Shown here: positions 2,786 through 59,017 of the stretch, in pieces
Numbering within the stretch: position 1 is the first letter of the stretch
Layout of the letters: the number at the start of each line of letters is the position of its first letter
Assembly: GCA_977020255.1 (NCBI GenBank)
Contig: CDROCS010001101.1
Location: forward strand, 310,001 to 374,000
DNA length: 64,000 bases
Reading direction: 5' to 3'
Source of the DNA: Obrimoposthia wandeli
Taxonomy: Eukaryota
The notes under the pieces: generated by a model
The model's database searches: none
Seen by the model: only the letters and a program-made list of their open reading frames with translations
What the model was told of the DNA's origin: nothing
Program-made: the position numbers and the translations under genes

Positions 2786-2799
2786 ATTGAACCCTAAGT

Positions 2800-3477
2800 T
2801 TAACGATTTACAGAGACAAGTTGATAACCAATTTTTGATAGGGTTTTAATATAGTGCTGCTGAAAAGGCTTATCAACTTGGTTACGTAATTGGTAAATAT
2901 GACTACGAAGAATATCGCCTTCTGGTTCATCCTCGCCCCAAATGGCATTAATTATTTCATTTTTAGTGACAATTTCTGGGGTTCTCATCATGAGTAATTT
3001 TAATATCGTAAATTGAGTAGGATTAAGCTCAAAATTACAACCATTACGAGAGGCTATATGGGTTTTTAAATCGAGTGATAATTCTTCAAACGATAGGATT
3101 TTAGCCGCATTTTTACCACTACGTCGGCGATGTAGTGCTTGAATTCGAGCACCTAGAATATCAAGATCAAATGGTTTAATAAGGTAATCATCAGCACCAC
3201 AATCAAAACCTGCCAGTGTATCTTCACGGGTATCACGTGCGGTTAACATTAAGATAGGCGTGTCATCACCCTGCTCTCTTAGTTTTTGACAGACTGTGAG
3301 TCCATCCATACGGGGCATTTGAACATCCAAAATGATTAAATCATAATAATTGTTACTCGCAAGTTCATAACCCTGAACACCATCCTGTGCATAATCTAAG
3401 GTGTAACCTTTGATTTCAAAAAAATCAAAAATGATCCCCGCTATATCTTGATGATCTTCAACTAACAATATTTTCAT
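2800..3477 (-). CDS. OmpR-family response regulator, ColR-like
   Basis: MKILLVED, LIILD, MLTARD and GADDYLIKPF. The C-terminus LNP...WGEDEPEGDILRSHIYQLRNQVDKPF closely resembles ColR as I recall it. Confidence 0.92.
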   Translation of the reverse strand: MKILLVEDHQDIAGIIFDFFEIKGYTLDYAQDGVQGYELASNNYYDLIILDVQMPRMDGLTVCQKLREQGDDTPILMLTARDTREDTLAGFDCGADDYLIKPFDLDILGARIQALHRRRSGKNAAKILSFEELSLDLKTHIASRNGCNFELNPTQFTILKLLMMRTPEIVTKNEIINAIWGEDEPEGDILRSHIYQLRNQVDKPFQQHYIKTLSKIGYQLVSVNR

Positions 3478-3510
3478 AATAGCTTAACCCAATAAATTGA
3501 TTACACCTTT

Positions 3511-3563
3511 ATTATGCCAAATACCATGTCGAATTAATGTAAAAATGTAAAAAACTTGTCGAA
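3511..3563 (-). promoter_or_regulatory. Predicted autoregulated promoter of the RR-HK operon with two direct-repeat boxes
   Basis: Minus strand: TCGAC-N6-TTTAC (3562-3547), then TTTAC-N6-TCGAC (3543-3528, at -39..-24), then TG-G-CATAAT (3519-3511). Confidence 0.55.
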
Positions 3564-3571
3564 AACATTTA

Positions 3572-3608
3572 TTCCACATGACCTTCACTAAAATGAGCAT
3601 ATTAGAAT
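3572..3608 (+). promoter_or_regulatory. Predicted promoter of the GT2-ArnT operon with a direct-repeat box
   Basis: TCCAC(3573-77)-N6-TTCAC(3584-88) upstream of TAGAAT (3603-08). Confidence 0.5.
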
Positions 3609-3626
3609 CCACTTCGGAATTTTCAT

Positions 3627-4718
3627 ATGCCAGCCAGTATTACATCCATTACAGAGCATCGCGATGTCCTTAAAGCCAAAACAACGCCTTTATTGTCTAT
3701 CGTCATTCCGTTTTTCAATGAAGATGAAGTGCTAAGCGAATGTCACCAACGGGTTGTCGCTGTACTTGATACATTATCTGAACCGTGCGAAATCATTTAT
3801 GTGGATGACGGCAGCAGTGATAAATCATGGGCACAAGTAATCAATTTCACAGCCAATAATCATACCGTACGCTGTATTAAACTGAGTCGTAATTTTGGTA
3901 AAGAATCAGCGATGACAGCAGGCATGATAAATACAACGGCTCGCGCTGTTATCTTACTCGACGCAGATTTACAAGATCCACCAGAACTCATCCCTGAAAT
4001 GGTTAGTGAATGGGAAAATGGCTATGATGTCGTTAACATGCAACGTAAACAGCGTCATGGTGAAAATTGGCTGAAACGTTCAACAGCCTATCTATTTTAT
4101 AAAGTCATTAATCGTTTAGCTGATATTGAGATGCCACGTAATGTAGGAGACTTTAGATTATTAGATCGTAAGGTCGTTGATGTGATTAACGCATTGCCAG
4201 AACGTAATCGTTTTATGAAGGGCTTACTTTCATGGCCTGGATTTAATACTTGTACGCTGCAATTTGATCGTGACGCCCGTCAAGCTGGTACCACTAAATG
4301 GAACTACGCAAAACTGATCCATCTTGCATTTGAAGGGATCACATCTTTTAGTATTCGACCATTACGTATCGCTACAGCCGCAGGTCTAGTTGCCTCTGTA
4401 ATATCTGTAATGATGGCGATTTTCCTTGTCAGTAAAACACTGTTCTGGGGTGATCCTGTAGCTGGTTACCCCTCATTAATGACCGTAGTGCTATTACTTG
4501 GTGGTATGCAGCTGTTATCTATTGGTTTAATGGGTGAGTATGTGGGCCGCTTATTTATCGAATCAAAACAACGTCCTAACTTTGTTGTCATGAATGAAAG
4601 TTGTACCACGCCAAATGTAAACGTCACCTCGCATAATCATGTTAACCAAAGCATTCATCAAAGTACCTATCAAACACATAACGCAAACTTTAAACAAGGC
4701 TCGTCTTCACATGTCTAA
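3627..4718 (+). CDS. GT2 polyprenol-phosphate glycosyltransferase (GtrB/ArnC/YfdH-like)
   Basis: SIVIPFFNE, YVDDGSSD, LSRNFGKESA, LDADLQDPP, GDFRLLDR, RFMKGL and two C-terminal TM helices followed by GEYVGR. Confidence 0.93.
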   Translation: MPASITSITEHRDVLKAKTTPLLSIVIPFFNEDEVLSECHQRVVAVLDTLSEPCEIIYVDDGSSDKSWAQVINFTANNHTVRCIKLSRNFGKESAMTAGMINTTARAVILLDADLQDPPELIPEMVSEWENGYDVVNMQRKQRHGENWLKRSTAYLFYKVINRLADIEMPRNVGDFRLLDRKVVDVINALPERNRFMKGLLSWPGFNTCTLQFDRDARQAGTTKWNYAKLIHLAFEGITSFSIRPLRIATAAGLVASVISVMMAIFLVSKTLFWGDPVAGYPSLMTVVLLLGGMQLLSIGLMGEYVGRLFIESKQRPNFVVMNESCTTPNVNVTSHNHVNQSIHQSTYQTHNANFKQGSSSHV

Positions 4719-6189
4719 AGCAGTAAATCATTTATCTTTAACCAAAATAGCCATCACCTTAGTGGTGACAGCAATCGCGATCAGATTATTTACCCTTGGT
4801 TTTTTTCCGCTCATGGATACTACCGAGGCTCGGTATGGCGAAATGGCCAGGATCATGGCTGAAACTGGTAACTGGATCACACCAATGTTCGATTACAACG
4901 TACCATTTTGGGGGAAACCACCATTATTTACTTGGATGAGCGCGGCGGGTATTTCGATATTTGGATTAAACGAATTTGCAGTTCGGATCCCACACCTACT
5001 CGCAGGTGGATTAATATTATCACTCGTTGGTTTACTCGCTTATAGCATAGTACCATCACTAAGCCGTTTAGAACGAAAGCAAGAAGGCTGGTTAGCTGCT
5101 GGTATCTTAGCGACAACAGCGACCTTTATTGTGGTCACTGGTGCTGTGATGACTGACACTGCCCTCACGTTAGGTATTACCCTTAGCATGGTTGCATTTT
5201 GGCTGAACTATAAAAATAAATCAGCCTTATGGGGACATTTATTTTTTATTGGTCTGACAATCGGTATGTTAGCAAAGGGACCTCTCGCATTAGTCTTGAT
5301 TGGTATAAGCTTATTTATATGGGCGCTGTTTAATAAAACGTGGATGAGCATGTTCCGTAGTTTACCCTGGAAAACCGGTATTCCACTGTTTCTTGCAACC
5401 AGCTTACCTTGGTATATCATCGCAGAATATTCATCTCCGGGTTTCCTTAACTACTTTATCGTTGGCGAGCATATCAAACGTTTCCTCGTGAGCGGCTGGC
5501 AAGGTGATTTATACGGTACAGCACACAAAGAGATCAAAGGGACAATCTGGGTATTTGCGATTGTGTCTGCCCTACCTTGGACGCCTATATTTATTTACCA
5601 ATGGGTTAAAAGTTTACAGATAACCATCAACACGAAGCGTGACTCAAAAGTACAAGAAGAAGACGATAGCATTGAGCTTAACTATACGAGTTTTTTGTGG
5701 GCTTGGTTATTATCACCACTATTACTATTTACATTTAGTGGCAATATTCTTTCGAGTTATGTGATGCCTTGCTTACCGGCGTTTGCTTTATTGATGGTGA
5801 CTTACCAGCGTAACAACCCATTATCGAGTAAAGTATATAAAACAGGGTTTATTGCACCGGTATTAATTTTGATTATTGCTATCTTATTACGTACTGAAAT
5901 AACGAGTAAACAGTCTGAAAAAGGCTTGATGCAAGCTTGGTCAAAACAAGCTCAGAATAGCGAGTTAATCTATATAGACAAACGACCATTCTCAGCTCAA
6001 TTTTATTCTCGAGGCGTCGCAGTTGAACGTAAAATAAAACTCGAAGTTGCAGTACAAGACATCACTAAAGACACCTATTTTGTTATACGTAAATCAAACG
6101 AAACGAAATTTTTAATCAAGAGCTTACCACAGTGTAAACTTATCAAAGAAGCGAAAAAACGTGTACTGGTATTCTGTACCGCACGTTAA
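4711..6189 (+). CDS. ArnT/PMT-like (GT-C fold) lipid-carrier-dependent glycosyltransferase
   Basis: DTTEARYGEMARIMAETGNWITP, FWGKPPL and LAKGP motifs, many TM segments. ATG 4711 overlaps the GT2 stop and is preferred to the track start at 4639. Confidence 0.9.
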   Translation: MSKAVNHLSLTKIAITLVVTAIAIRLFTLGFFPLMDTTEARYGEMARIMAETGNWITPMFDYNVPFWGKPPLFTWMSAAGISIFGLNEFAVRIPHLLAGGLILSLVGLLAYSIVPSLSRLERKQEGWLAAGILATTATFIVVTGAVMTDTALTLGITLSMVAFWLNYKNKSALWGHLFFIGLTIGMLAKGPLALVLIGISLFIWALFNKTWMSMFRSLPWKTGIPLFLATSLPWYIIAEYSSPGFLNYFIVGEHIKRFLVSGWQGDLYGTAHKEIKGTIWVFAIVSALPWTPIFIYQWVKSLQITINTKRDSKVQEEDDSIELNYTSFLWAWLLSPLLLFTFSGNILSSYVMPCLPAFALLMVTYQRNNPLSSKVYKTGFIAPVLILIIAILLRTEITSKQSEKGLMQAWSKQAQNSELIYIDKRPFSAQFYSRGVAVERKIKLEVAVQDITKDTYFVIRKSNETKFLIKSLPQCKLIKEAKKRVLVFCTAR

Positions 6190-6257
6190 TGATAATTCAT
6201 ATCCGTGATAGCTAGTCATTAAGCTATTCACAAGATTTCCATTAATAGCATCACCTG

Positions 6258-6297
6258 ATGCAAGTTAGTGATATACACTAACTTGCATTTTTTGTTT
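6258..6297 (+). terminator. Intrinsic terminator of the GT2-ArnT operon
   Basis: Perfect 13-bp stem atgcaagttagtg/cactaacttgcat followed by a T-rich tract. Confidence 0.8.
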
Positions 6298-6375
6298 AAA
6301 ATTCACTATATAGCATGATATGAAAGGCTTAAATAACCTACACTAGTAAGATACATAACTTACTGAGTAGCCTAT

Positions 6376-7281
6376 ATGCATATATTAATTACGGGAGGTA
6401 CTGGCTTCATCGGCCAAGCATTTATTAATACCTTCCAGTCTGATTATGATTTTACCGTATTAACTCGTAATATCAGTAACGCCAAACGTACATTTGCACA
6501 TATACCGAGTCATAACATAAAGTTCATCACGCAATTTAATGAATTACCAGATGAAATCCATATCGATGCAGTCATCAATCTAGCTGGTTCACCTATTATG
6601 GATAAAATGTGGAGCGACAAACACAAACATGTTCTGGAATCGAGTCGTTGGGAAATAACCCAACAGCTGGTTGATTTAATATCAGCCAAGACAATCACGC
6701 CAAGCGTATTTATCAGTGGTTCAGCCATTGGTATTTACGGTCGTCAAGATGATCAGATTATTGATGAACAATACCAAGATTACCACCCAGAATACTCTAG
6801 CCACTTGTGCGAACATTGGGAAGAAACAGCTCGAGCAGCCAGCCCGTTAACCCGTACCGCAATAATGAGAACAGGCATTGTATTGGCTAAAGATAAAGGC
6901 GCTTTACAAAAAATGGCCTTGCCGTTTAAATTAGGACTTGGTGGCCCTATCGGGCAAGGGAAGCAATATATGTCTTGGATACATATTGATGATATGGTCT
7001 CAGCAATGAATTATTTATTACAAAACAATTCGCTCTCTGGCACATTTAATCTTACCGCACCAAACGCTGTCACCAATCGTGATTTTTCAACTCAATTGGC
7101 CGCTTGCTTTGATAAAAAAGCACGTTTCACAACGCCAACACTGGTATTACGTTTATTACTCGGCGAGCGTGCGGACCTGATTATTTATGGGCAACGTGTC
7201 ATACCAACACACCTAGTAGATTCAGGTTTTAAATTTAAGTATGATACGTTAGACCAAGCATTCTCAGAAATTTATGCTTAA
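6376..7281 (+). CDS. yfcH: TIGR01777 family NAD-dependent epimerase/oxidoreductase (DUF1731)
   Basis: ILITGGTGFIG, VINLAG, FISGSAIG, GPIGQGKQYMSWIHIDD, FNLTAP. Confidence 0.92.
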   Translation: MHILITGGTGFIGQAFINTFQSDYDFTVLTRNISNAKRTFAHIPSHNIKFITQFNELPDEIHIDAVINLAGSPIMDKMWSDKHKHVLESSRWEITQQLVDLISAKTITPSVFISGSAIGIYGRQDDQIIDEQYQDYHPEYSSHLCEHWEETARAASPLTRTAIMRTGIVLAKDKGALQKMALPFKLGLGGPIGQGKQYMSWIHIDDMVSAMNYLLQNNSLSGTFNLTAPNAVTNRDFSTQLAACFDKKARFTTPTLVLRLLLGERADLIIYGQRVIPTHLVDSGFKFKYDTLDQAFSEIYA

Positions 7282-7619
7282 TACTCACGCTTTCTTGCTA
7301 GTCTAATTGCGTCGAATATATTCACTAACCAGACACAAAGTAACATAACAGTGGCATAGTAAACACCTTGAGTATCAAGACTTGCCATCTGTTGTGTCAC
7401 CAATGTATTTATACTCAGTACATCAATCTGCCCGCCAGACTGCAGCACCTTATCGATGATTAATTGTGTTTGTGTCATGGTGACATCTATAATCACATAG
7501 AGCGGTATCACGGCTGCAATTGCAAATACACCTGCCAGTATATATCGCTTTAACCACCAATGTGCCGCACCAGGAAACAAGAACGCAGCCAACAGACCTG
7601 CTTTAACAATATTACTCAT
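7278..7619 (-). CDS. Small conserved membrane protein (DUF6677-like)
   Basis: AAFLFPGAAHWWLKRY start, three hydrophobic segments, NIFDA end. Confidence 0.7.
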   Translation of the reverse strand: MSNIVKAGLLAAFLFPGAAHWWLKRYILAGVFAIAAVIPLYVIIDVTMTQTQLIIDKVLQSGGQIDVLSINTLVTQQMASLDTQGVYYATVMLLCVWLVNIFDAIRLARKREY

Positions 7620-7637
7620 AAACCATCCTAAATGAAT

Positions 7638-9242
7638 TCAACTAGCGATAAACAGTAGTGGTAATAGTAACAGACACAAAGAGTGAAATGTAACGCGCAT
7701 TGGTTTAAAGACAAAACCGAGCATAAATAGAATAAAGATAAGCACGCTAGCATTCGGATAAACACCACTGATTAGTTGCTCTTGCTCGAGCCAAATAGCA
7801 TCATTTACCGTTACCCTTGCCCAAATAGCTTGAATTCGATTTAAAACATCATTCACAATCATGAGTAATAGACCGCTAACCTTCGGGGTGATACCAACTA
7901 AGAGCACGGCTATCAACAACACGGGTAATACAAATACACTAAAAATAGGAATGAAAATCAAGTTGATGATGACAGAGATTAAGCTAACGCCCGAGAACAC
8001 CGACAGTTGCATCGGCAACATAAATAATGTCAATAGTACTTGGCTATGGCAAAGGTATACTAGCTTGCTTACAACTGCCTGTGCCGCCAATTTAATACGA
8101 TAACACTTGATACGATACCAAACTGCAATCACATTACCTTGCTTATCTAGCTCATTCACCTCACTCTTTTCACCAACATGGCTCTGCTGTTTGTTTAGCC
8201 AAACCAATATAAAGACAGCAGCCATAGCGAAAAAGGATAACCAAAAGCTAACCGAGAATGCCGTCAATGGATCGACGACTAAGGTAACCAACAGCATAAT
8301 AGAAAACAACTGTAACAACGTTACTTTATAATATTGCAGTCGATAAAGGCTGTGGATACCCAATAAAATGATCGCCCTTAACGCTGGTAACGAAAACCCC
8401 GCTATCCACGCATAAAATAGAGCTGCGAGCAAACTAAGCACTAAAGTAATACTTAGTTGATAAGGCTGATTAAATACTCTCAATAATGGCTGTATACAGG
8501 CATAAAAAAAGCCAAATATAAGCCCTATATGCAAACCAGAGATAGCCACAAGGTGCCCAATCCCTAATAATTTAAACTGCGTCCATAATTCATTACTAAT
8601 GTAACTCCTATCACCAAAACTTAACGCATACAGCATAGGGTTACTGTTGTCAGGCAAAATTGATTTAAATACTTGGTACAACTCCCCACGTAAACTAAAC
8701 TTAGAGTTGATTATTTCGCCTTTATCAATAAAACCGGTATAACGTATATGATGTGCTAATAATCTCGATTCTTTGGTATCGATAAGGCGTACCTTAAATC
8801 GCCATACTTGACCAATACCTAAGTCTCCTTCGTAGTGGTACTCTGGGTTTAGCCACTTTAACCTAAGCTTTGGCTGATAATAAGGCGTCTCCTGACCATT
8901 AATGTCAATGACGTTCACATCAAACGAAAGTCGATTTTTATTATTTACTAATGTTATTAGTTCGGCTGTTATGATATTGTCTTCAACTACTCTTTTTGAT
9001 GATTCTTTGTATTGCCACTTTGTATTAAGCAGTAACATATTTGCTTCATTTATGACGTTATTTTTATATATTACAGACCAAGACAGAGTAATAAACAGCA
9101 ATACTAATATAGGTGTTATCTTCAAGTAAAAAATGGTAAAGGCAGCGACTGCCATTATCGTAATATATTCAATACGTTCGATATCAATAAAGAACATACT
9201 TATTAATATGGTAATGGAAAGTAATATGGCCTTAAAGGGCAT
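7638..9242 (-). CDS. comEC: ComEC/Rec2 DNA uptake channel, short form without the metallo-beta-lactamase domain
   Basis: LSFGDRS, HLVAISGLHIG, GFSLPALRA, SFWLSF and NLIFIP competence-domain motifs. The ORF ends at 534 aa after a TM helix. Confidence 0.88.
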   Translation of the reverse strand: MPFKAILLSITILISMFFIDIERIEYITIMAVAAFTIFYLKITPILVLLFITLSWSVIYKNNVINEANMLLLNTKWQYKESSKRVVEDNIITAELITLVNNKNRLSFDVNVIDINGQETPYYQPKLRLKWLNPEYHYEGDLGIGQVWRFKVRLIDTKESRLLAHHIRYTGFIDKGEIINSKFSLRGELYQVFKSILPDNSNPMLYALSFGDRSYISNELWTQFKLLGIGHLVAISGLHIGLIFGFFYACIQPLLRVFNQPYQLSITLVLSLLAALFYAWIAGFSLPALRAIILLGIHSLYRLQYYKVTLLQLFSIMLLVTLVVDPLTAFSVSFWLSFFAMAAVFILVWLNKQQSHVGEKSEVNELDKQGNVIAVWYRIKCYRIKLAAQAVVSKLVYLCHSQVLLTLFMLPMQLSVFSGVSLISVIINLIFIPIFSVFVLPVLLIAVLLVGITPKVSGLLLMIVNDVLNRIQAIWARVTVNDAIWLEQEQLISGVYPNASVLIFILFMLGFVFKPMRVTFHSLCLLLLPLLFIAS

Positions 9243-9270
9243 TCATTACCCCTGACATTTGATTAGAATT

Positions 9271-9789
9271 ATGCCTAAGAATTTAATTAAAAAATATCTC
9301 CCAAACCCTGAATCAATCAAAGAACATAAGCATCTTAGAATCTTTGGTGATTTACTAAATAACGCAAACCTTTGGCACTTAAATCGCCGCTCAGCTGCTG
9401 GTGCTTTTGCTGTTGGTCTATTTATGGCCTTTGTACCAGTGCCTTTCCAGATGTTGCTGGCAGCTGGTTTTGCCATTTTATTTCGTGTTAACTTACCGCT
9501 CTCTGTCGCCCTTGTATGGCTATCTAACCCAGTGACTATGCCACCGATGTTTTATGCCACTTATGTCTTAGGCGCGTGGATATTACAAGTACCCGTACAT
9601 CCATTCTCCTTTGAATTAACAATGGAATGGCTGATACAGGCAATATCGTTATATGGCCCTGCTTTTTTACTAGGCTGCTTTGTATCTGGTACATTCTTTT
9701 CTATTCTTGGTTATTTTAGTATCCGCTGGCTATGGCGCTGGAAAATAATCAATGCATGGAACAAACGTAAAGAGTCACGCACAAAATAA
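9271..9789 (+). CDS. DUF2062 domain membrane protein
   Basis: NLWHLNRRSAAGAFAVGLF, NLPLSVALVWLSNPVTMPP. ATG 9271 (MPKNLIKKYLP) is preferred to TTG 9259. Confidence 0.9.
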   Translation: MPKNLIKKYLPNPESIKEHKHLRIFGDLLNNANLWHLNRRSAAGAFAVGLFMAFVPVPFQMLLAAGFAILFRVNLPLSVALVWLSNPVTMPPMFYATYVLGAWILQVPVHPFSFELTMEWLIQAISLYGPAFLLGCFVSGTFFSILGYFSIRWLWRWKIINAWNKRKESRTK

Positions 9790-9803
9790 CAATTGAAAAT
9801 GCG

Positions 9804-9840
9804 AAGGCCACAGCACTAAACCAGTGATGTGGCCTTTTTT
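9804..9840 (+). terminator. Intrinsic terminator after the DUF2062 gene
   Basis: aaggccaca...tgtggcctt stem followed by a T run. Confidence 0.8.
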
Positions 9841-10064
9841 ATGTTCTATGTTCTTTGACGAATTTGGACAATGAGTGCATGCGAGCTATCTTGACGATCT
9901 CCAGACCGCAGTTTTTATCAGCTGTAAAGGGCATGAATGTCGAGTTAGGCTAGCGTAATAAATATAGTTGTAAAAAGGTAAGGAGCATGGGTAAGGCTAG
10001 ATATGATAGAGCAGGACGCTAAACTGTGGCCAAATCCGTTGACCACAAAGTTATAATTTATTCG

Positions 10065-10457
10065 TTATTCTTCAATACCGTCTTTAATAAACCAAACGTT
10101 AGTAAAGCCTAGTTTAGTAAAATGATTTTTACGGAACTCTCTGACAGATTTAGTACCCTTAGATACATCTTCAACTTGTTTTTCCATCATCATATATTGC
10201 GTTAGATCGATCCCTTCTTCTGCAGCAACTGCTTCATAAATATGGTGAAACTTGCGATATGAGAATGGAATCTTCTTATCTTCTTTGTTATAAGTATAGG
10301 TAACTAGGTGGGCCAAAATGCCTCCAAATAATAATTGAATTCGATAGTCGTTTAACGAATATCGAGATCTTACTGATAATTTATCAAAATTGAACTGATA
10401 ATTTGTGCAGATAATACCACACTCGCCCCTTTCGTCAAAAGTTGAGTCTGGTATCAC
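10065..10457 (-). CDS. AT-rich hypothetical ORF or gene fragment
   Basis: Open frame of 130 codons from GTG 10457, 13 nt after the ycfH stop. No strong SD and no recognisable motif. An imperfect hairpin (tgtggccaa...ttgaccaca) lies near 10025-10047. Confidence 0.4.
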   Translation of the reverse strand: MIPDSTFDERGECGIICTNYQFNFDKLSVRSRYSLNDYRIQLLFGGILAHLVTYTYNKEDKKIPFSYRKFHHIYEAVAAEEGIDLTQYMMMEKQVEDVSKGTKSVREFRKNHFTKLGFTNVWFIKDGIEE

Positions 10458-10470
10458 GCTTATGTCGATA

Positions 10471-11244
10471 TTACTTTTTAGCGTTAAACAGCTTAAAGTA
10501 GTTATCTGTTGTTGTTTCTGCGAGTTCAGCAAAGCTTACACCGCGCAACTCAGCAACAAACTCCGCAACAGCTCGTACATACGCTGGTTGATTCTCTTTA
10601 CCACGGTACGGAACAGGCGCGAGGTATGGAGAGTCCGTTTCAACAAGTAAACGGTCAGCTGGAATTGTCTTCACAACTTCTTGTAAATCTTTCGCTGATT
10701 TAAATGTCACAATACCAGAAATAGAGATATAAAAGCCCATTTCTAATACCGCAGCAGCCATCGCATCAGATTCAGTGAAACAATGGATAACACCGCCAAT
10801 TTGCTCTGCACCTTCTTCTTTTAAGATGCGGATAGTATCGTCAACAGCACCACGGGTATGAATAATCAGCGGTTTTTTTAGTTCAATAGCCACTTGAATG
10901 TGATTACGGAATGACGCTTGCTGAATATCCTTATTTTCAGGTGAATAGAAATAATCTAAACCCGTTTCACCAATAGCAACGACTTTTTCATTTTGTGCTA
11001 ATGCCAATAACTCTGACTTTTCGTACTCATCTTCAAGGTTAAGTGGATGAACACCACACGAAGCGTGAATATTATCAAAATCAGCAATCAATTCGATCAT
11101 CGTTTTAAAACGCGGCAATGTGACTGACACGCTAAGTAAGTGTGAAACACCGCGTTCAGTTGCTTTGTTCACAACGTCCGCAAGGTCGGTATGAATGGTA
11201 TCGTAATTTAATCCATCTAAATGGCAATGAGAATCTACTAGCAT
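10471..11244 (-). CDS. ycfH: TatD family DNase YcfH
   Basis: DSHCHLD, GVHP, AIGETGLDY, PLIIHTR, GVIHCF, LVETDSPYLAP. Confidence 0.95.
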   Translation of the reverse strand: MLVDSHCHLDGLNYDTIHTDLADVVNKATERGVSHLLSVSVTLPRFKTMIELIADFDNIHASCGVHPLNLEDEYEKSELLALAQNEKVVAIGETGLDYFYSPENKDIQQASFRNHIQVAIELKKPLIIHTRGAVDDTIRILKEEGAEQIGGVIHCFTESDAMAAAVLEMGFYISISGIVTFKSAKDLQEVVKTIPADRLLVETDSPYLAPVPYRGKENQPAYVRAVAEFVAELRGVSFAELAETTTDNYFKLFNAKK

Positions 11245-51034: not shown

Positions 51035-52891
51035 TTAATTACCTTTGAGCGTCACCATCGTTATGAAGGTTCTTAATATAATCATCACATCTGCTTTCAG
51101 CCAGCGAGAAAAACTCGTTAGGCTTAAAGCATATGCGTGGTCCCAATAGAGCTTATTTTGCACATCTTCTAAGCACGTATCTGCCCCTTGCGATATTTGT
51201 GCTAAACCTGTAATACCAGGCCTAACACCATTAGTTCGCTCCAAGTAATAAGGGATCTTCTCTTCTAGTTTGCCACAGAACACTGGGCGCTCAGGTCGAG
51301 GACCAACAATGGCCATATCGCCAAGTAATACATTAATCAATTGTGGCAGTTCATCTATTCTCGTTTGACGTAAAAAGCGCCCTACCGACGTTATCCTTGT
51401 ATCTTTTTTTTGCGCCCACACAGGTCCTGATTTTGATTCTGACTCAACCCCCATCGTTCTAAACTTAATTAACATGAATACTTCAACATATTCATTTTTA
51501 ATTTCACCTACACGTAATTGACGATAGAACACCGGCCCCTTAGAGTTTAATTTAATCGCCAGAGCAACGAAAGGCACAAGCGGTGTGATAACAATCAATG
51601 CTGCAATCGAAATAAGGATATCGCTGACGCGTTTTGGGATCACAACACTTTTTTGCTGATAATTAGATGTCGCTTGCTGCTCTGAGCTGATCTTAATCCA
51701 GGTACCACGATCTAAGCCGAAAAGGTAGCGCAGACCGCCATAAAAACTCGCCATATAACCTGTCGCAATATAATACAATGAGGCCCAAGGTTGCTTTACA
51801 GGTGCTGCATCAAATAACAGAGCGAAGGCTGAACCACCATACAAAGCGCACTGCCCCAACCACAAAAACCAGGCTGTATTTGCAACAAAAATAGACTGAC
51901 TATTGGTTAAAAAGAAAGTAAGAAAAAATAATACTAATAGATTAAATGGCATCAACGTACGTAAGAATTTCCCACTAAAAAAATTAAAACTGGTTAAACC
52001 ATTTTTCGATGAAAACAGCCCCCTTAACCTTAAGGCCTGCTGAACATTACCAGCACCAATACGTGTTCTGCGAGTAAAATCATTAGTCGTATTTGTTGCT
52101 TCCATCTCGATAATCGAAATGCGTTCATCCATCACAGCACGATAACCACGGCTAACTAACAGCATTGGAAAAACAAAATCATCATTGATGGTATCAACCG
52201 GTATCTGTTCAAACAAAGAGGCTTTAATCGCATACAGTGCGCCAGGGGGACCGATAATTGAACCAGTTATACTTTCAGCTTTACGAATGTTACGTTGGTA
52301 ATCCCAGTAATGCGCTTCACCTTTAGAACCATGCTCATAAAGCTGGTAATCACCCGTCACAACGCCTACGTCCTTTTCGGCCATTCTATGCGCAAATATT
52401 TGCATCGCATCAATCGAGATAAGCGCGCTCACATCGCTTAAAACGAGAATGTCTGACGTCGATTTATGTCGCATCAACAATTTATTGATCACATGAACCT
52501 TGCCGTTATTACTTTCAGCAACATCTAATTCAATCGTTATATCGTGTGCTGTAAATTGGGGTAAATATTCATTAGCAATAGTAACTGAATCATCAGTACA
52601 GCCATCAAAACCAAGCACAATTTTAAGTTTATCAGCGGGATAATCGAGCATGAGTAAGTTACTTAGTTTAGCGCCTAAATGCTTAGACTCGTTATAAACA
52701 GGCATGACAATAGTGATATTAGGAAGAGCAGAATCGACATCATTCGATACGTAGTTTCGAGATTCAAAAGTATCTATGTTGTTATCTGATTGCTTATACT
52801 TAACGTAATATTGCAGTAACTTAGGGTAAATCCAATGATGATAAATAAACAAATTAATCGATACTGCCGTACCAAATAAAAGCCAATCCAT
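51035..52891 (-). CDS. Fusion of a membrane GT2 glycosyltransferase (SypQ-like) and an undecaprenyl-phosphate priming sugar transferase (SypR-like)
   Basis: N-part: IYHHWIYP TM, VMPVYNE, FDGCTD, TINDDF, RRTRIGAGN, TM helices. C-part: KR..D.....L, GPVFYRQ.RVG, KFRTM, IDELPQL.NVL.GDM.IVGPRPE, PGITGLAQ. Confidence 0.88.
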   Translation of the reverse strand: MDWLLFGTAVSINLFIYHHWIYPKLLQYYVKYKQSDNNIDTFESRNYVSNDVDSALPNITIVMPVYNESKHLGAKLSNLLMLDYPADKLKIVLGFDGCTDDSVTIANEYLPQFTAHDITIELDVAESNNGKVHVINKLLMRHKSTSDILVLSDVSALISIDAMQIFAHRMAEKDVGVVTGDYQLYEHGSKGEAHYWDYQRNIRKAESITGSIIGPPGALYAIKASLFEQIPVDTINDDFVFPMLLVSRGYRAVMDERISIIEMEATNTTNDFTRRTRIGAGNVQQALRLRGLFSSKNGLTSFNFFSGKFLRTLMPFNLLVLFFLTFFLTNSQSIFVANTAWFLWLGQCALYGGSAFALLFDAAPVKQPWASLYYIATGYMASFYGGLRYLFGLDRGTWIKISSEQQATSNYQQKSVVIPKRVSDILISIAALIVITPLVPFVALAIKLNSKGPVFYRQLRVGEIKNEYVEVFMLIKFRTMGVESESKSGPVWAQKKDTRITSVGRFLRQTRIDELPQLINVLLGDMAIVGPRPERPVFCGKLEEKIPYYLERTNGVRPGITGLAQISQGADTCLEDVQNKLYWDHAYALSLTSFSRWLKADVMIILRTFITMVTLKGN

Positions 52892-52893
52892 AG

Positions 52894-53955
52894 CTACTCC
52901 TTAATTAATTGATTATAAGCTTTAATCATCGTTCTGATATCAAAGTACTTAATGATAAAATCACGTGGGTTATATTCACTTGTCCGTTTCATCTGTGTTT
53001 GGATCGCTATGTGAAATTCATTAACCGTATTTACCGTAATCAAATGCCCGGTTTTCTGACATACACCTTCACGCACAGCACCAACATCACTACAGAGAAC
53101 GGGTACGTTACAAGACTGAGACTCTAAAATAGATAAAGGTAAGCCTTCATTAGATGAGGTTAATACAAACAAATCTAACTGATGATAAAAACCAACCATA
53201 TCATCAACATAACCAATAAATTTAACTTTAGTTGATAGGTCTAGTTCTTGCACTAGTTTATTCAAATTTCGTTTTTCTGGGCCATCACCAGCAATATATA
53301 GCTCAACACCTGGAATATCCGCAACCGATTTTATCAAGATATCTAATGATTTCTCTTTTACTAATCTCGCCGCACAACCGATCTTAAACACTCTGCTATT
53401 CGGCTTATAACGCAAGTGATGTAAACAAGGTAAAAATTTTTCGGTATCAATACCATTCAAAATGGTCACAGGTTTAACACCTAGACCGAGTACTTGCGAT
53501 AATTGCACTCCAACAGCCTCTGCATCGGCAACTAAAGTAATATGATTTAATCGCAGCATTAACTTAGTCATTTGTAATTGCTTATTATCACGTAAATGCC
53601 ATGCATCATGTTCGGTATGAATATGCTGTATATTAGCTAATCGTAGTGTTGCCATTACGCCATAAAGTAGCGGCCCTATGTGATGGGTATGGATAATGTC
53701 AGCACGTAGCATCGTTAATACTTTTTTTAACCGTTTTATTGTCGACAGCTTGAACCCCGGCGCTTTGTCCAAAAATATCAACCGTTCTTGATAAGCTTTA
53801 AGCGTCGGCCATTGCTGTAAACACGCTGATTTTTCACCTTCCAACGCAACAATATACACCTCGATACCAGAATCTTGTAACCGCATGATATCAAAAACTA
53901 ATTTCTCAATACCTCCCGGTTTTAAATGCTGAATTATTTCAACCATGATTTTCAT
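52894..53955 (-). CDS. GT4 glycosyltransferase (SypP-like)
   Basis: HLKPGGIE, HTEH, NGID, CAARL..EK, IAGDG, EGLPLSILE. ATG 53955 follows an AAGGA SD. Confidence 0.9.
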   Translation of the reverse strand: MKIMVEIIQHLKPGGIEKLVFDIMRLQDSGIEVYIVALEGEKSACLQQWPTLKAYQERLIFLDKAPGFKLSTIKRLKKVLTMLRADIIHTHHIGPLLYGVMATLRLANIQHIHTEHDAWHLRDNKQLQMTKLMLRLNHITLVADAEAVGVQLSQVLGLGVKPVTILNGIDTEKFLPCLHHLRYKPNSRVFKIGCAARLVKEKSLDILIKSVADIPGVELYIAGDGPEKRNLNKLVQELDLSTKVKFIGYVDDMVGFYHQLDLFVLTSSNEGLPLSILESQSCNVPVLCSDVGAVREGVCQKTGHLITVNTVNEFHIAIQTQMKRTSEYNPRDFIIKYFDIRTMIKAYNQLIKE

Positions 53956-55408
53956 TATTGCTGTCCTTTTCATAATCAATCGAAGGTAATCGCGCAAGAA
54001 TATTCATATCATCAAAAACACTGATTTTTTTAATATGCCACAACGTATCATCTAATAACTCGACCAAGACAGTCAAACCGATACCACCACCAATACCGCC
54101 TATCAAACCAACGACAAGGTAGACAAGCAAGGTTAAATTAGTCGGATAACCAGGTGTGAATGCTCTATCGATCACTTTGATCTTTTCAGATTCTTCATGA
54201 CGTCCTAACTCGCCTGTAACCTTAGCCATTTCATGGCGATTAAGCAGATCATGATAGAGTTTAGTATTCACAGACAAGTCCCGTTCCAGTGCACTAAGCT
54301 CCTTCGCTACATCTGCCTCCATCGCCACATTATTGGTTAACTGCTTAGATTGTTTGTGCAACATTGCAATTTCATTCTCTAACTGAATAACCCGTGACTG
54401 CGCCGTTTGTAGATTTTCTAACTGTGATAGCAATAGTGAAGGCCTTTTATTCTCTCCATCACCACCCTCAACCACAGAGGCTAGATTCCACAATTGATTT
54501 AGCTGCTCATCAGTCAACTCAACATTTTTACTGAGTAACTTCTGCTGCTCATTTTTTAAATTATTTAACTGTAATTCGACAGATTGTACTTTTGAATGAC
54601 TGCGCGTGTAGCTTGCTTTCAATAATGACAGTTTCGCTTCTGCCGATACAATTTGCTCTTCAACGATACCAATCACCGGATTCGTTTGAGCTAATTTAAG
54701 TTTCAAACTTTTTAACTGCCCATAAGCACCAGACAATTCAATGTCTTTATCGCGAATGTCTCTGTACATAGAAAACAAAGTTTGATTGTTTTGCATAAAT
54801 AATTCAGGTAATACACCAAGGTGCTCACGACGAAAGGCAGCCATTTTTCCTTCTGCAATCACGAGTTTTTCGCGTCTTAAATCGAGCTGCGCAAGTAAAA
54901 ACTTTTCTGATGAAATAATCGATGCCCGGCTGGGTGCCATTAAGCTTTCAATGAACAATTGGCTAACTGAATTTAAAATAGACTCCATTTGGCCTGGTTC
55001 ATCCCATTTCAGGGTAATAATAACCAAGTCCGTACCAGATAAGGTTAATGTGATCGCATCTGAAAGTTGACCGACAATCAAATCCCTTGAGCGATAATCA
55101 CTATTTTCATCTATTAGGCTATTTTGTTCTGCAACCGTGAATAAAATATGTCGACTATGCACTAATACCCGTAACGCGACCATACGGTCTTCAAGGTTAA
55201 AAGACACCGATAAATCTTCAAGAAACGGGTTAAGCAATGCACTTTCTTGGACCAAAATAGAAGTGTGAGATATATACCGTTTAGGGGTCAGAATACTCAT
55301 AGAGAACGCAATTAAGATCGCCAAAATAATAGAAATACTGGAATAATAACGGCGACGCCACATTATTTCGATAAACTGATAAATATTACCCCAAATAATC
55401 GTACCCAT
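53939..55408 (-). CDS. Polysaccharide co-polymerase / chain-length determinant (Wzz/GumC, SypO-like), no kinase domain
   Basis: WRRRY + TM, LVQESALLNPFLEDLSV, long coiled coil, Y.DLL.R.E.AKVTG.LG, KVID, C-terminal TM. Confidence 0.88.
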   Translation of the reverse strand: MGTIIWGNIYQFIEIMWRRRYYSSISIILAILIAFSMSILTPKRYISHTSILVQESALLNPFLEDLSVSFNLEDRMVALRVLVHSRHILFTVAEQNSLIDENSDYRSRDLIVGQLSDAITLTLSGTDLVIITLKWDEPGQMESILNSVSQLFIESLMAPSRASIISSEKFLLAQLDLRREKLVIAEGKMAAFRREHLGVLPELFMQNNQTLFSMYRDIRDKDIELSGAYGQLKSLKLKLAQTNPVIGIVEEQIVSAEAKLSLLKASYTRSHSKVQSVELQLNNLKNEQQKLLSKNVELTDEQLNQLWNLASVVEGGDGENKRPSLLLSQLENLQTAQSRVIQLENEIAMLHKQSKQLTNNVAMEADVAKELSALERDLSVNTKLYHDLLNRHEMAKVTGELGRHEESEKIKVIDRAFTPGYPTNLTLLVYLVVGLIGGIGGGIGLTVLVELLDDTLWHIKKISVFDDMNILARLPSIDYEKDSNNENHG

Positions 55409-55410
55409 AA

Positions 55411-55941
55411 TTACAACCGAGTACTTTTGAGTAAGCCTACAGGTTTCTGCGTTGACACCCCTGTTGTTTGGATAATGTTCTCCTCAATAAGAACTGAGTC
55501 GAACGCTACAGCGGGATCGTAACTAATTCGAATAACCTCATTATGCTTCGCTAACGCTTTAATAACAGATTGCACACGTTGGTGGCCAATCGATAAAGCA
55601 GCATAATCACTCTCTGCTTTTGCTTTCCCATAACTTATGATCGCACCATTTTGCCAATCGTATAAATAAAGCAACCGCTTATTCTGACTATCGGTTAACA
55701 TCACTTGTTTATATTCAAACACAAAATTTAATTTTCTTGCCGTTACTGCCGATTCATTAGCCGAATTAGCAGAATTAGCAGAATTAGCAGAATTAGCAGA
55801 GGTATTATTCGACAATTCGGTAAGTTGCCCTGCCATTTCCATCGACATATCTTCTGGTGCACTCGCGCACCCATATAGCAATACCAAAGGAACGAACATC
55901 AGTTTAACTCGCGCACGTTGATAATGAATAAATCCGTTCAT
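55411..55941 (-). CDS. Putative lipoprotein with a degenerate OmpA-like C-terminal domain
   Basis: Lipobox-like LYGC, SAN-repeat linker, FEYKQVMLTDSQ and LSIGHQRVQSV resembling the OmpA_C pattern. Confidence 0.6.
   Translation of the reverse strand: MNGFIHYQRARVKLMFVPLVLLYGCASAPEDMSMEMAGQLTELSNNTSANSANSANSANSANESAVTARKLNFVFEYKQVMLTDSQNKRLLYLYDWQNGAIISYGKAKAESDYAALSIGHQRVQSVIKALAKHNEVIRISYDPAVAFDSVLIEENIIQTTGVSTQKPVGLLKSTRL
55756..55800. repeat. 9-nt in-frame tandem repeat (gaattagca x4 perfect, about 5 in total), encoding (SAN)5
   Basis: Read directly at 55763-55798 plus partial flanks. Confidence 0.92.
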
Positions 55942-55989
55942 ATTACACTCCCTTACTCTTATACATCTGTTGCTGTTATACAGATGACT

Positions 55990-57204
55990 TTACATTAATG
56001 ATGCAACGTCGATTTTTTCTGCCACTAGTCGAGTGACAAGTTCACAACGAGCTTGCCAACTTGCTGTTTCAACCCTTTTTCGTGATCTACTTTTTAACTT
56101 AACTAATGCCTTGGGCGACAAAGCAAGCGCTTGATTTAACTGTGCTAACATTTCATATTTATCCTCAGCCACATAGATACAATCAGCAAACGGCAATACA
56201 GCAGGATATCGAGTACTTAGAATAGGCTGGCCGATAGCGAGGTATTCCCTTAATTTTAATGGATTACAGGCACGTATTTGCTCATTATCAACAAAGGGAA
56301 TAAGTGATACTTGCCAATTAGCTGCATATTGAATCAGTTGTTCGTGAGGCATATTGGGCAAATGAATAAGATTGCTCGCTTTAAAAAGTTCACAATTAAC
56401 AATTTCAATTTTGCCAATAAATAAAAACGTCACATCAGGTCTAGATTGCGCAAGAAACGTGATTAATTCAAAATCCAACCACGTCGTAATACTGCCATAA
56501 TAACCAACAACTAAATCTGATTTAGGGTAGTTATCTGGACGTTTATGGCTACTAGAAAAGTGTACTAGGTCAACCCCGTGAGGTAATACATAGGTTTTGT
56601 CTTGTGGATATTGTCGTGCTATTACCTCACTCGCTGCAAAGATAATATCAGCCTCTTCAACAAGTGCGATCTCTTCCCGTCTCACTTGCTTATGATCAAC
56701 ACCATTTAATGCACTAAAATCATCACCAGCATAATAAACCACCACATCTTCTTCTAATGCTCCAATAACACAGCGAGCGGTCGGTAATGAGAGCCACAAT
56801 ATTCTGGGTACCTTGTCCTCGGTTTCATTTTTACCAAGCAACGCACGAGTTTGATACGTCAGTAATAAACGATTTATCACATAAGCAACCTGGCAACCTG
56901 GCCAAGGGATCGCAACAGGGGCCAGTATAGCCAAAGGTTGCACATCATTTGTTAATGTTGACTCACCCTGATTAAAGTCATTATTTGTGGCATGTTTTAA
57001 CTGCTTAAACTTTTCAATAATACGTTTACTATCGCTTAATTTAGGTTTTCTCAAGCCAATAGAATTAACCCAATATAACTGATTATTTACAGCCATACAT
57101 TTCATTAAATGTTGTGTACTACTGGGATGGCGTCCCCAATCTTCACCAAATACAATCCATTGCCAATTTGTCAGAGTGCGCTGTTTTATAGTGTCTTTTT
57201 TCAT
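55990..57204 (-). CDS. GT-B glycosyltransferase (TuaH/SypN-like)
   Basis: FGEDWGRHPSSTQHL, WVNSIGLR.P, YYAGDDF, PHGVD, ACNPLKLREYLA.G. Confidence 0.88.
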   Translation of the reverse strand: MKKDTIKQRTLTNWQWIVFGEDWGRHPSSTQHLMKCMAVNNQLYWVNSIGLRKPKLSDSKRIIEKFKQLKHATNNDFNQGESTLTNDVQPLAILAPVAIPWPGCQVAYVINRLLLTYQTRALLGKNETEDKVPRILWLSLPTARCVIGALEEDVVVYYAGDDFSALNGVDHKQVRREEIALVEEADIIFAASEVIARQYPQDKTYVLPHGVDLVHFSSSHKRPDNYPKSDLVVGYYGSITTWLDFELITFLAQSRPDVTFLFIGKIEIVNCELFKASNLIHLPNMPHEQLIQYAANWQVSLIPFVDNEQIRACNPLKLREYLAIGQPILSTRYPAVLPFADCIYVAEDKYEMLAQLNQALALSPKALVKLKSRSRKRVETASWQARCELVTRLVAEKIDVASLM

Positions 57205-57905
57205 AATGCTTTAATGACCTTAGCTGGAATGCCACCAGCAAGTACACCCGCAGGTAAATCATGGGTGACAATACTTCCAGCAGCGACGATGGTGCCCTCA
57301 CCGATAGTCACACCCGCCATGACACTCACGCCAGTCGCCAGCCACACGTCACGTTTAAGTATAATGTCACCAACTTGCGATTCATGATCTGCAGCGCCCG
57401 CAGCACGCTCTTGTGCATCTATCGGATGTCCTGGGTAACCAGCAAGAAATACCCGGCCAGCTAATCTGACATTATCTTCAATAATAATATTGCCTCCGAC
57501 GGCAATATTATTCTGCCAATTAATATCGACATTATTACCAATGATTAACCTAGATGGTTTGCCATTCATACTACGGCCACTTAATGTTGATATGCCAGAC
57601 ACACGGCAGTTATCACCGAGCGCAATGGTTAAATGACCAAGTATCAAAGGCATGCCTGAATACAAATACAGCTTACTGGGTTTGGTTAGTAATCGACTTT
57701 TAAATAATGGTGTCCAGTAGATAACTCTTAACATATTGGCCAAAAGTTGGGATATAAAAAGGTGAGTTCTTAAAATAAAAGGATGTAAAACAGGGACTAC
57801 TGGAATAGAAAATTGCATTAACCCTCGGATATAACGATGGCAGGTTCTAGCTGGTCGGCTATCTTCTCTCTTCAGCCACAGCTTTAATGAATTAAGCATA
57901 TCCAT
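57201..57905 (-). CDS. Hexapeptide-repeat (LbH) O-acyltransferase (SypM-like)
   Basis: LYSGMP, IIGNNVDI, HP.D...R..G, VWL..GV.V..GVTIGEG.IVAAGSIVT..LP...LAGG.PA. Confidence 0.88.
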   Translation of the reverse strand: MDMLNSLKLWLKREDSRPARTCHRYIRGLMQFSIPVVPVLHPFILRTHLFISQLLANMLRVIYWTPLFKSRLLTKPSKLYLYSGMPLILGHLTIALGDNCRVSGISTLSGRSMNGKPSRLIIGNNVDINWQNNIAVGGNIIIEDNVRLAGRVFLAGYPGHPIDAQERAAGAADHESQVGDIILKRDVWLATGVSVMAGVTIGEGTIVAAGSIVTHDLPAGVLAGGIPAKVIKAL

Positions 57906-58093
57906 ATAATTACGTCCTTTGCCATTACTGAATCATTTAGCAAGAATAGACCATATAAAAACAATAGGTTAAATAAGCTTGAAAAATAATAAAGATTAAA
58001 ATCAGCTACATCACAGCCGATATTATTTAAATCGACTAAGCTCATTATTAATGCAAAGGATTTGTCATTTAAAGAAATTAAGGTGGTGCGAAG

Positions 58094-59017
58094 ATGAAAC
58101 CAATCGTGAGCGTCATTATTCCAAGTAAGGACTGCCTTTCTACTCTACCTCGCGCAATTGAAAGTGTTTGGCTGCAAGGTATTAAAAAAATTGAAATCGT
58201 AATTATTGATGATGGTTCCACAGATAAAAGCTGGGAATGGATATGTCAATTATGCCGTAAACACAATAATATTATTGCATTAAAGTTAGACTCTGAAGGT
58301 TCCTCAACGGCACGAAATCATGCAGCTAGGCTTGCTAGTGGTACATACATTGCTTTTCTAGATGCCGACACATTTTGGTATCAACACAAGTTACAACAAC
58401 AAATAACATTTATGGAAGACAATCCACAAGTGGGCATTAGCTTTACTAATTGTGAGGTAATGAACGAAAAAAGTGAAGTAACACATGACCGCTTTACCTG
58501 TAGTGATGATTTCAAGCAACAGGCACTTCAGCAAACCCAAGATGCATTTGTCATTCCTCAAGGTGCTGCAACTATTTTTTCAGAGAATGTCATTGGTACA
58601 TCGACCGTACTTGTTAGGCGAGATCTGTACTTAGCGTTAGATGGCTTTGACCATAATATAAAGTTAGTCTCTGATTGGGACCTTTGGCTAAAATTTGCAT
58701 TACACACAGCGATAGGTTGTATCAAAAAACCATTAACCGCTAGCGTCTGCAAAAAAATAGTGGTTAGTAATCAAATGAAACAATTAAAAGCAATGGAACA
58801 AGTCATCAAGCGCTATGAAAACAAAATAAAAACAATTGACCCTTACGCGGTGCATTCTGCGCATGCACATTTATTAGCGTCCTATGCTCAATATTACCGT
58901 CAAAAGTCTTGCCCTCGCAAAGCCTTAGCTTGTGATTTCAAGGCTTTGTGTGAACAACCCACTCCACAGCATTTTCGCAATATATTAACCGACTTGAAAC
59001 TCACTATCCAAATGTAG
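58094..59017 (+). CDS. GT2 family glycosyltransferase, divergent from the polysaccharide operon
   Basis: VSVIIP, IIDDGSTD, ARN, IAFLDAD, SDWDLWL. Confidence 0.9.
   Translation: MKPIVSVIIPSKDCLSTLPRAIESVWLQGIKKIEIVIIDDGSTDKSWEWICQLCRKHNNIIALKLDSEGSSTARNHAARLASGTYIAFLDADTFWYQHKLQQQITFMEDNPQVGISFTNCEVMNEKSEVTHDRFTCSDDFKQQALQQTQDAFVIPQGAATIFSENVIGTSTVLVRRDLYLALDGFDHNIKLVSDWDLWLKFALHTAIGCIKKPLTASVCKKIVVSNQMKQLKAMEQVIKRYENKIKTIDPYAVHSAHAHLLASYAQYYRQKSCPRKALACDFKALCEQPTPQHFRNILTDLKLTIQM

Follow-up and report, generated by a model that had tools for sequence, protein, structure and literature searches.

A natural fusion of SypQ-type glycosyltransferase and SypR-type phosphoglycosyl transferase domains in a Moritella syp-like locus

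Vibrio fischeri needs the Syp polysaccharide, the chemistry of which is poorly defined, to colonise squid, and several vibrios need it to form biofilms. In V. fischeri, Aliivibrio salmonicida and V. parahaemolyticus the domain order of a transmembrane (TM) glycosyltransferase (GT) of family GT2, SypQ, followed by a sugar transferase, SypR, is the same as in the protein described here, and disruption of sypQ in A. salmonicida abolishes biofilm and rugosity (PMC6420764). The published syp loci also encode SypK, a polysaccharide biosynthesis protein of the Wzx flippase family, and SypL, an O-antigen polymerase (PMC6420764). Proteins in which a monoPGT core is fused to a second catalytic domain, be it an acetyltransferase or a glycosyltransferase at the N- or C-terminus, form the published BiPGT class (PMC11257628, PMC10942596). 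We describe an open reading frame (ORF) that joins a SypQ-like GT2 to a SypR-like phosphoglycosyl transferase (PGT). It lies in a stretch of 64,000 nucleotides, referred to below as the window, which spans positions 310,001 to 374,000 of contig CDROCS010001101.1 (C1101) in assembly GCA_977020255.1. The assembly is filed under the eukaryote Obrimoposthia wandeli; since it amounts to 1.35 Gb in 6,912 contigs, we read it as mixed or host-associated, and no fewer than two distinct genomes of Moritella are present in it (contigs C1101 and C1350).

The gene occupies 51035..52891 of the minus strand as one open frame, which starts with ATG and encodes 618 amino acids (aa). Among Pfam families, Glycos_transf_2 (PF00535) matched aa 60-216 with 35.1 bits (cut-off 23.3), Glyco_tranf_2_3 (PF13641) matched aa 57-189, and Bac_transf (PF02397) matched aa 420-613 with 182.9 bits (cut-off 27, E 5.5e-54) over positions 1-178 of the 179 in its profile. 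The NCBIfam models EPS_sugtrans, WcaJ and WbaP matched in the C-terminal catalytic part alone. The layout has three parts: a membrane GT2 (aa 1-395), a polar linker (ISSEQQATSNYQQK, aa 401-414) and a complete monotopic PGT (aa 420-618). A first-pass annotation made from the sequence had described one frame with TM helices around a GT2 domain, a linker and Bac_transf, and both the ORF listing and Pfam bear it out. The linker and an RRTRI motif (aa 274-278) are present as it described them, and Bac_transf begins at codon 420 (bases 51632-51634), no more than two bases from the 51636 that it gave.

The frame is open in all six other Moritella sequences compared, which are 80-90% identical and come from independent assemblies, one isolate genome included; the check in other strains that had been proposed thus favours the fusion. 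These sequences are from M. marina ATCC 15381 (P0003, 90% identity), Moritella sp. Urea-trap-13 (P0004, 89%), three further assemblies (L001-L003, 80-86%) and contig C1350 of the same assembly as the window (L085; 87% aa and 80% nucleotide identity, same synteny). On contigs C2834 and C1802 of this assembly, Bac_transf matches lie in open frames about as long as a fusion (605 and 588 aa). Among five Moritella genes compared, the proportion of differing synonymous sites (pS) was 0.6-0.75, which is saturated, that of nonsynonymous sites (pN) was 0.05-0.14 in both domains, and the ratio of the two substitution rates (dN/dS) was at most 0.08. In the linker pN was 0.15-0.25, about twice the domain rate, and a stop was never gained. 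Judged by these rates, both halves are under strong purifying selection. The sole internal alternative start is a GTG at codon 417, which has no Shine-Dalgarno sequence, and a search for a separate translation start of the C-terminal domain therefore upheld the single frame.

How widespread the fusion is was addressed by a word-based protein search, which returned 1,319 relatives; in 117 of the 120 best clusters the protein is this fusion, about 555-666 aa long, with a GT2 Pfam domain and PF02397. Within these best 120, fused clusters come from Moritella, Photobacterium, Thaumasiovibrio, Agarivorans, Alteromonas, Echinimonas, Hyphomicrobiales, Azorhizobium and a zetaproteobacterial metagenome-assembled genome (MAG), and more than 100 fused clusters belong to genera other than Moritella. 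A scan of species genomes confirmed 498 relatives, from which 80 loci were kept. Translation of the junction revealed that 32 of the 80 are truly fused and that 48 have a stop exactly at the junction. In split loci the GT2 and the PGT often share one frame, with the GT2 ending after a conserved G-x-W-(T/K)-R tail and the PGT starting 3-30 codons on; in the alignment of junctions, the polar linker of fused loci occupies the place of this stop and spacer. Six-frame and tblastn searches score such in-frame split pairs as full-length fusions, which is a trap for architecture counts.

The pair was fused in 28 of 151 sampled Vibrionaceae genomes, split in frame in another 28 and split with separate matches in about 45, the rest being without the pair; in nearly every genome with the GT2 half the PGT adjoins it, split or fused. 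On a quick tree, Moritella and Photobacterium fall in an all-fused group of 24 (Shimodaira-Hasegawa-like approximate likelihood ratio test support 97), and the remaining fused lineages lie dispersed among split ones. This tree, which carries long-branch warnings, requires at least five changes of state, of which only one is forced by strongly supported branches. The alternation of the pair between one gene and two genes split by a single in-frame stop provides strong comparative evidence, drawn from gene structure, that SypQ and SypR act together.

With these counts and a published BiPGT class, the view that the two enzymes are normally separate genes and that their fusion is the strongest protein-level novelty of the window is not supported. 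The search for GT2 plus Bac_transf architectures revealed a common one: the fusion is common in marine bacteria, and the gene is an ordinary member of an already annotated architecture. Public databases list the fused proteins as 'sugar transferase' or 'SypR', the latter being the name of the fused Photobacterium proteins. Our literature search found no paper that describes or assays this SypQ-SypR fusion, and a search for PF02397 together with PF00535 retrieved annotations of exopolysaccharide clusters alone and nothing on this fusion.

An AlphaFold2 (AF2) model was built from 116 sequences, with a mean predicted local distance difference test score (pLDDT) of 90.4 and a predicted template modelling score (pTM) of 0.68. 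From the N-terminus it contains a TM helix, a GT-A domain, an interface helix with RRTRI, two TM helices, an amphipathic helix, the linker and a PglC-like domain. The closest structure to the GT2 half is PcManGT of Pyrobaculum calidifontis (PDB 6YV7; Z 34.0, root mean square deviation 3.5 Å over 342 of 346 residues, 21% identity), with a profile E of 1.3e-32 and a target-normalised Foldseek TM-score of 0.80. PcManGT is a membrane GT2 mannosyltransferase with three antiparallel TM helices (PMC10569066). As modelled, the GT2 half is a PcManGT-like, three-TM "minimal cellulose-synthase-like" membrane GT2. An IcaA/PgaC-type label does not fit, since the PgaC_IcaA model (TIGR03937) scores 47.4 bits against a cut-off of 422.3, with aa 48-255 alone aligned, and the nearest structure is no channel-forming synthase.

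Residues invariant in the GT-A domain are E68, D96/G97/D100, N128-G130-K131, D153-V-S155 and, in the catalytic-base region, N236-D237-D238; K308 and R311 of the GT2 half are invariant as well. At the position of the canonical metal-binding DxD, all 116 sequences have D-V-S. A phmmer alignment places the DAD of PcManGT on D153-V-S155 and its ADD on N236-D237-D238; the catalytic base of PcManGT is D223 (PMC12595478). In the RRTRI motif, R274, R275 and R277 are invariant in the 116 relatives, I278 is at least 90% conserved, and Trp is absent at this position. The same RRxR[I/L/M] pattern is found in stand-alone GT2s (P0050, P0051) and in split Vibrio genes. Because it is invariant in the relatives and common to stand-alone GT2s, RRxR[I/L/M] is, by alignment, a family-wide signature and not a local oddity of this gene.

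Topology was read from the AF2 model, structural homology and family charge statistics. Simple hydropathy analysis (threshold 1.6) was rejected, as it placed a false TM segment at aa 148-167, inside the GT-A fold, and failed to detect TM1 and TM3. Over the 116 sequences, the mean net charge is -0.4 for the N-terminus, +0.9 for the loop after TM1, +3.2 for aa 268-288 and +4.1 for aa 289-311, and the TM2-TM3 loop is uncharged and 1.3 residues long on average. The helix at aa 369-390, with net charges of +1.5 and +2.0 on its flanks, is weakly hydrophobic (family mean hydropathy 0.79) and has a hydrophobic moment of 0.84 in the window protein. BcsA residues 97-505 align with model residues 1-400, and the position of this helix corresponds to what we take to be interface helix IF3 of BcsA. 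Stand-alone GT2s end just past its equivalent, with a basic tail.

Since there are three TM helices, a TM2-TM3 loop of 1.3 residues and positive flanks around helix 369-390, the linker and both domains would be cytoplasmic. We conclude from the model that the N-terminus is outside and is followed by TM1, a cytoplasmic GT-A domain, an interface helix, the TM2-TM3 hairpin, a second interface helix, a cytoplasmic linker (pLDDT below 50 at aa 401-408), a re-entrant helix and a cytoplasmic PGT. Both active sites are accordingly predicted, from the model and charge statistics, to face the cytoplasm, which answers in the affirmative the question of topology raised with the gene's first description.

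In the PGT half, K420 and R421 of the re-entrant helix are invariant, D424 is nearly so, and the helix is broken at T437-P438, the re-entry itself being predicted by the model. The D513-E514 dyad and G530-P-R-P-E534 are invariant in the 116 sequences. The closest structures are WbaP (8t53, Z 20.2) and PglC (8e37, Z 17.8), at 34-35% identity, and the WbaP profile gives an E of 3.7e-39. Searched alone, this half is nearest to stand-alone small PGTs of 210-220 aa from Vibrio, Aliivibrio, Endozoicomonas and Motilimonas (54-61% identity). As in the monotopic PGT superfamily, Bac_transf covers the whole core and is accompanied by the re-entrant helix, the Asp-Glu dyad and PRP; transfer activity is predicted. 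By its motifs, the PGT half is of the SypR type, with all catalytic motifs kept.

We propose that the fusion is probably a bifunctional inner-membrane enzyme, with both domains cytoplasmic, that acts in repeat-unit synthesis on undecaprenyl phosphate (Und-P), at the first step and at an early second one. The pathway would be that of a syp-type (Wzx/Wzy-dependent) exopolysaccharide. The SypR-type half would transfer sugar-1-phosphate from a nucleotide sugar to Und-P at the cytoplasmic face, three TM helices together with basic interface helices (RRxR, SGKxLR) in the SypQ-type half would hold the resulting Und-PP-sugar, and the GT-A domain of that half would attach a sugar at an early position, probably the second. 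Completion of the repeat unit would fall to the GT4, the TuaH-like GT, the soluble GT2 and the acetyltransferase encoded nearby. Flipping, polymerisation and export would be supplied in trans, and Wzc-like, Wza-like, Wzx and Wzy-like genes 55-64 kb upstream on the same contig are candidate partners. The fusion may have originated when a sypQ-like gene next to a sypR-like one lost its stop codon along with the short spacer that kept the two apart, and it would set the two enzymes at a 1:1 ratio, side by side in the membrane.

A self-priming enzyme that channels its product straight to elongation had been suggested at the outset. Because the fusion is real, the PGT motifs are complete and both domains are predicted to be cytoplasmic, the most economical interpretation is a bifunctional enzyme that is self-priming; as to the order of reactions, the addition of a single sugar, the identity of the sugars and any substrate channelling, we infer them. 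Several points weigh against this reading. The activity of either half is a prediction for the whole family, and the GT2 step is placed second or later by inference. V. parahaemolyticus SypR was inactive with the available panel of uridine diphosphate (UDP) sugars (PMC11257628). The replacement of DxD by D-V-S across the family means that metal or donor binding may be unusual. The pTM and the low-confidence linker make the modelled placement of the two active sites relative to each other tentative. Finally, the GT2 of a syntenic relative (L081, see below) occurs without any PGT domain and would therefore have no strict need for a fused priming enzyme.

A bolder form of the same idea, which we consider unlikely, is that the fusion does more than bring the domains together: the three-helix half tunnel of the GT2 and the PGT re-entrant helix would make up one composite undecaprenyl site, in which the Und-PP-sugar is kept between steps 1 and 2, and SypR-type PGTs would be inactive in the absence of SypQ. 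Dependence of SypR on SypQ would explain why V. parahaemolyticus SypR shows no activity in vitro, and that result may leave room for such a requirement. The radical version of the composite site is a self-primed processive synthase.

Such a synthase, which we regard as improbable, would have a processive GT2 half that extends the Und-PP-sugar from the fused PGT into a homopolymer, perhaps through a channel formed by two paired three-TM half tunnels. Synthase-dependent elongation on a primer occurs in the Salmonella O:54 O-antigen, where WbbF elongates on a primer made by WecA. The GT2 half has a cellulose-synthase-like fold, sharing the GT-A domain, interface and TM helices with HAS (Z 24.6) and BcsA (Z 23.1), it is weakly similar to PgaC, NodC and CelA, and the local cluster contains neither flippase nor polymerase. 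However, channel-forming synthases have six to eight TM helices, and the predicted model, with three TM helices plus interface helices, falls below the five expected of a processive channel. The Trp of Q(R/Q)xRW is I, L or M throughout the family, the PgaC_IcaA score is about 47 bits where 422 would be needed, three further GTs adjoin the fusion gene, Wzx and Wzy-like genes lie on the same contig, and published syp loci of the same gene order have SypK and SypL (PMC6420764). The three TM helices, the missing Trp and these two syp genes also argue against the earlier idea of a hybrid between synthase-type and Wzy-type assembly.

Similarly doubtful is a fusion brought about by a shared substrate, in which the GT2 half is a polyprenyl-phosphate GT that makes Und-P-sugar, like DPMS, GtrB and ArnC, and the two domains are joined by their common use of Und-P. 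PcManGT is reportedly dolichyl-phosphate-dependent, and a lone phosphate group could be held by the basic residues that are invariant at the membrane face. On the other side, ArnC, DPMS and GtrB match the GT2 half with Z of 15.0-16.7, far below the 23-34 of PcManGT, HAS and BcsA, and this cluster has no GT-C enzyme for periplasmic use of Und-P-sugar.

It is still less probable that one half is catalytically dead and scaffolds the other or anchors it in the membrane, as the GT2, with DxS in place of DxD, might do in the role of an N-terminal membrane module. The DxD is degenerate in every sequence of the alignment, and large PGTs are known to carry non-catalytic N-terminal modules such as a four-helix bundle (PMC10942596). 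Yet E68, D96, D100, D153, S155, D237 and D238 are invariant and dN/dS is about 0.05, which is the pattern of an active site, and the GT2 also occurs in stand-alone versions, which biofilm formation requires (PMC6420764). That the single ORF is an artefact of an assembly error that removed a stop, or yields two products through an internal PGT start, is very improbable: 48 of 80 related loci are split by an in-frame stop alone and codon 417 is GTG, but the six Moritella frames and the fused clusters of other genera speak against the former, and the lack of a Shine-Dalgarno sequence and the position of the next Met, M475, past the membrane helix, against the latter.

The genes surrounding the putative bifunctional enzyme are listed in Table 1 together with its parts. 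The gene order of acetyltransferase, GT, chain-length protein, GT4, GT2 and PGT is that of sypM-N-O-P-Q-R of A. salmonicida (PMC6420764), and all five genes were found by tblastn in 71 of the 80 loci. The GT4 gene adjoins the fusion or the split pair in 80 of 80 loci, and the TuaH-like GT is present in 75 of 80 (tblastn). With the TTG start listed for it, the GT4 gene shares 59 bases (53939-53997) with the final part of the chain-length gene; since relatives align from about aa 15 on, the true start is probably further downstream. The 176-aa lipoprotein belongs to no Pfam family, and its tblastn matches among the 80 loci are in the three Moritella loci L001-L003 alone.

Table 1. Parts of the fusion gene and neighbouring genes in the window (positions within the 64,000-nucleotide stretch).
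Feature	Position	Strand	Basis and remarks
Whole GT2-PGT fusion ORF	51035..52891	-	stop codon 51035-51037; both Pfam domains; no in-frame stop
TM1, aa 2-32, N-terminus predicted outside	52796..52888	-	AF2 helix 2-32; aligns with PcManGT TM1
GT-A catalytic domain, aa 51-262	52106..52741	-	PF00535, PF13641; invariant columns
Interface helix, aa 268-288	52028..52090	-	AF2; R274-R275-T-R277-I278 at bases 52058-52072, QxxRW position of processive GT2 synthases
Amphipathic SGKxLR segment, then TM2-TM3 hairpin, aa 299-359	51815..51997	-	AF2 helices 299-328, 334-359
Amphipathic helix, aa 369-390	51722..51787	-	read as cytoplasmic interface helix like IF3
Linker, aa 391-419	51635..51721	-	site of GT2 stop, short spacer and PGT start in split relatives
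PGT re-entrant membrane helix, aa 420-449	51545..51634	-	AF2 helix 414-449; PglC alignment (PglC residues -1 to 183) from first residue
PGT catalytic domain, aa 450-618	51038..51544	-	Bac_transf; D513-E514 dyad (bases 51350-51355), G530-P-R-P-E534
GT4 glycosyltransferase (SypP position)	52894..53997	-	Pfam Glycos_transf_1, Glyco_transf_4; two bases upstream of fusion gene
Chain-length-determinant-like protein (SypO position)	53939..55408	-	Pfam GNVR; TIGR03007 pepcterm_ChnLen E 1.4e-61; TMs 21-43, 422-453
176-aa lipoprotein	55411..55941	-	lipobox LYGC, SAN repeats; between SypN-like and SypO-like genes
Soluble TuaH-like GT-B glycosyltransferase (SypN position)	55990..57204	-	NF047676 TuaH E 3.5e-22; no TM segments
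Hexapeptide-repeat O-acetyltransferase (SypM position)	57201..57905	-	Pfam Hexapep; WbbJ-/WcaF-like; first gene of minus-strand operon
Soluble GT2 glycosyltransferase, divergent	58094..59017	+	Pfam Glycos_transf_2 E 1.7e-28; TuaG-/EpsE-like

The window was also searched for sigma-54 promoters. There were 59 matches against 56.5 expected by chance, and the sole intergenic one (58053-58067) breaks the -24 GG; with matches at chance level, this hit was rejected, and no credible sigma-54 site was found. At 1532-6189 the window further contains genes for a histidine kinase (1532-2785, minus strand) and a response regulator (2800-3477, minus strand), a divergent GT2 gene (3627-4718, plus strand) and a 516-aa ORF (4639-6189), which may together be a regulated lipid or glycan modification module.

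A second locus is located on the same contig at C1101:296907-306469 (L082, 6907-9737; L083, 987-7764), 55-64 kb upstream of the fusion gene. It encodes a Wzc-like kinase, a small Wza-like exporter, a WbaP-type large PGT, an acyltransferase_3 protein, a Wzx flippase, a Wzy-like polymerase and a beta-helix protein, and no ordinary glycosyltransferase gene was seen among its genes. By gene content, this machinery-rich locus and the GT-rich, machinery-poor locus at 51035-59017 look complementary. The syntenic relative mentioned above is in a MAG (GCA_052426985.1, L081), where positions 3124-10712 hold NIF3, a GT2 on the reverse strand, the acetyltransferase, a 401-aa GT, the GT4 and a stand-alone 406-aa GT2 (P0050) that is 55% identical to the GT2 half of the window protein. 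This locus is without a PGT domain, the chain-length gene and the lipoprotein.

Under the reading that we favour, a bifunctional enzyme for the first two membrane steps, the natural fusions of Moritella and Photobacterium provide single-chain constructs that are ready for use in assays and cryo-electron microscopy of these steps. Compared with the syp system, in which SypQ and SypR are two proteins, Moritella has one polypeptide, plus an inserted Moritella-specific lipoprotein; identity to the products of split Vibrionaceae genes is 51-58% for the PGT half and 37-44% for the GT2 half. A full syp locus comprises 18 genes and has sigma-54 promoters, whereas the Moritella locus has seven, bounded by NIF3 and CsiV/mfd, and sypA-L (the regulators, the SypC exporter, the SypK flippase, the SypL polymerase and three GTs) are absent from it. 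PcManGT, in turn, is archaeal, has no fused PGT and carries a canonical DAD where the window family has DVS. Processive synthases have five to eight TM helices, the Trp of QxxRW and a PgaD-like or PilZ-like partner; the GT2 half has three TM helices, RRxRI and neither partner. PglC and WbaP have in common with the PGT half a re-entrant helix with KR...D and an S/T-P break, the Asp-Glu dyad and PRP, and the N-terminal partner of this core is a four-helix bundle with a nucleotide-binding domain in WbaP and a GT2 in the window fusion. With a second catalytic domain, GT2, on the same polypeptide as Bac_transf, the window ORF is a BiPGT, a membership that rests on the definition of the class given in PMC11257628 and PMC10942596.

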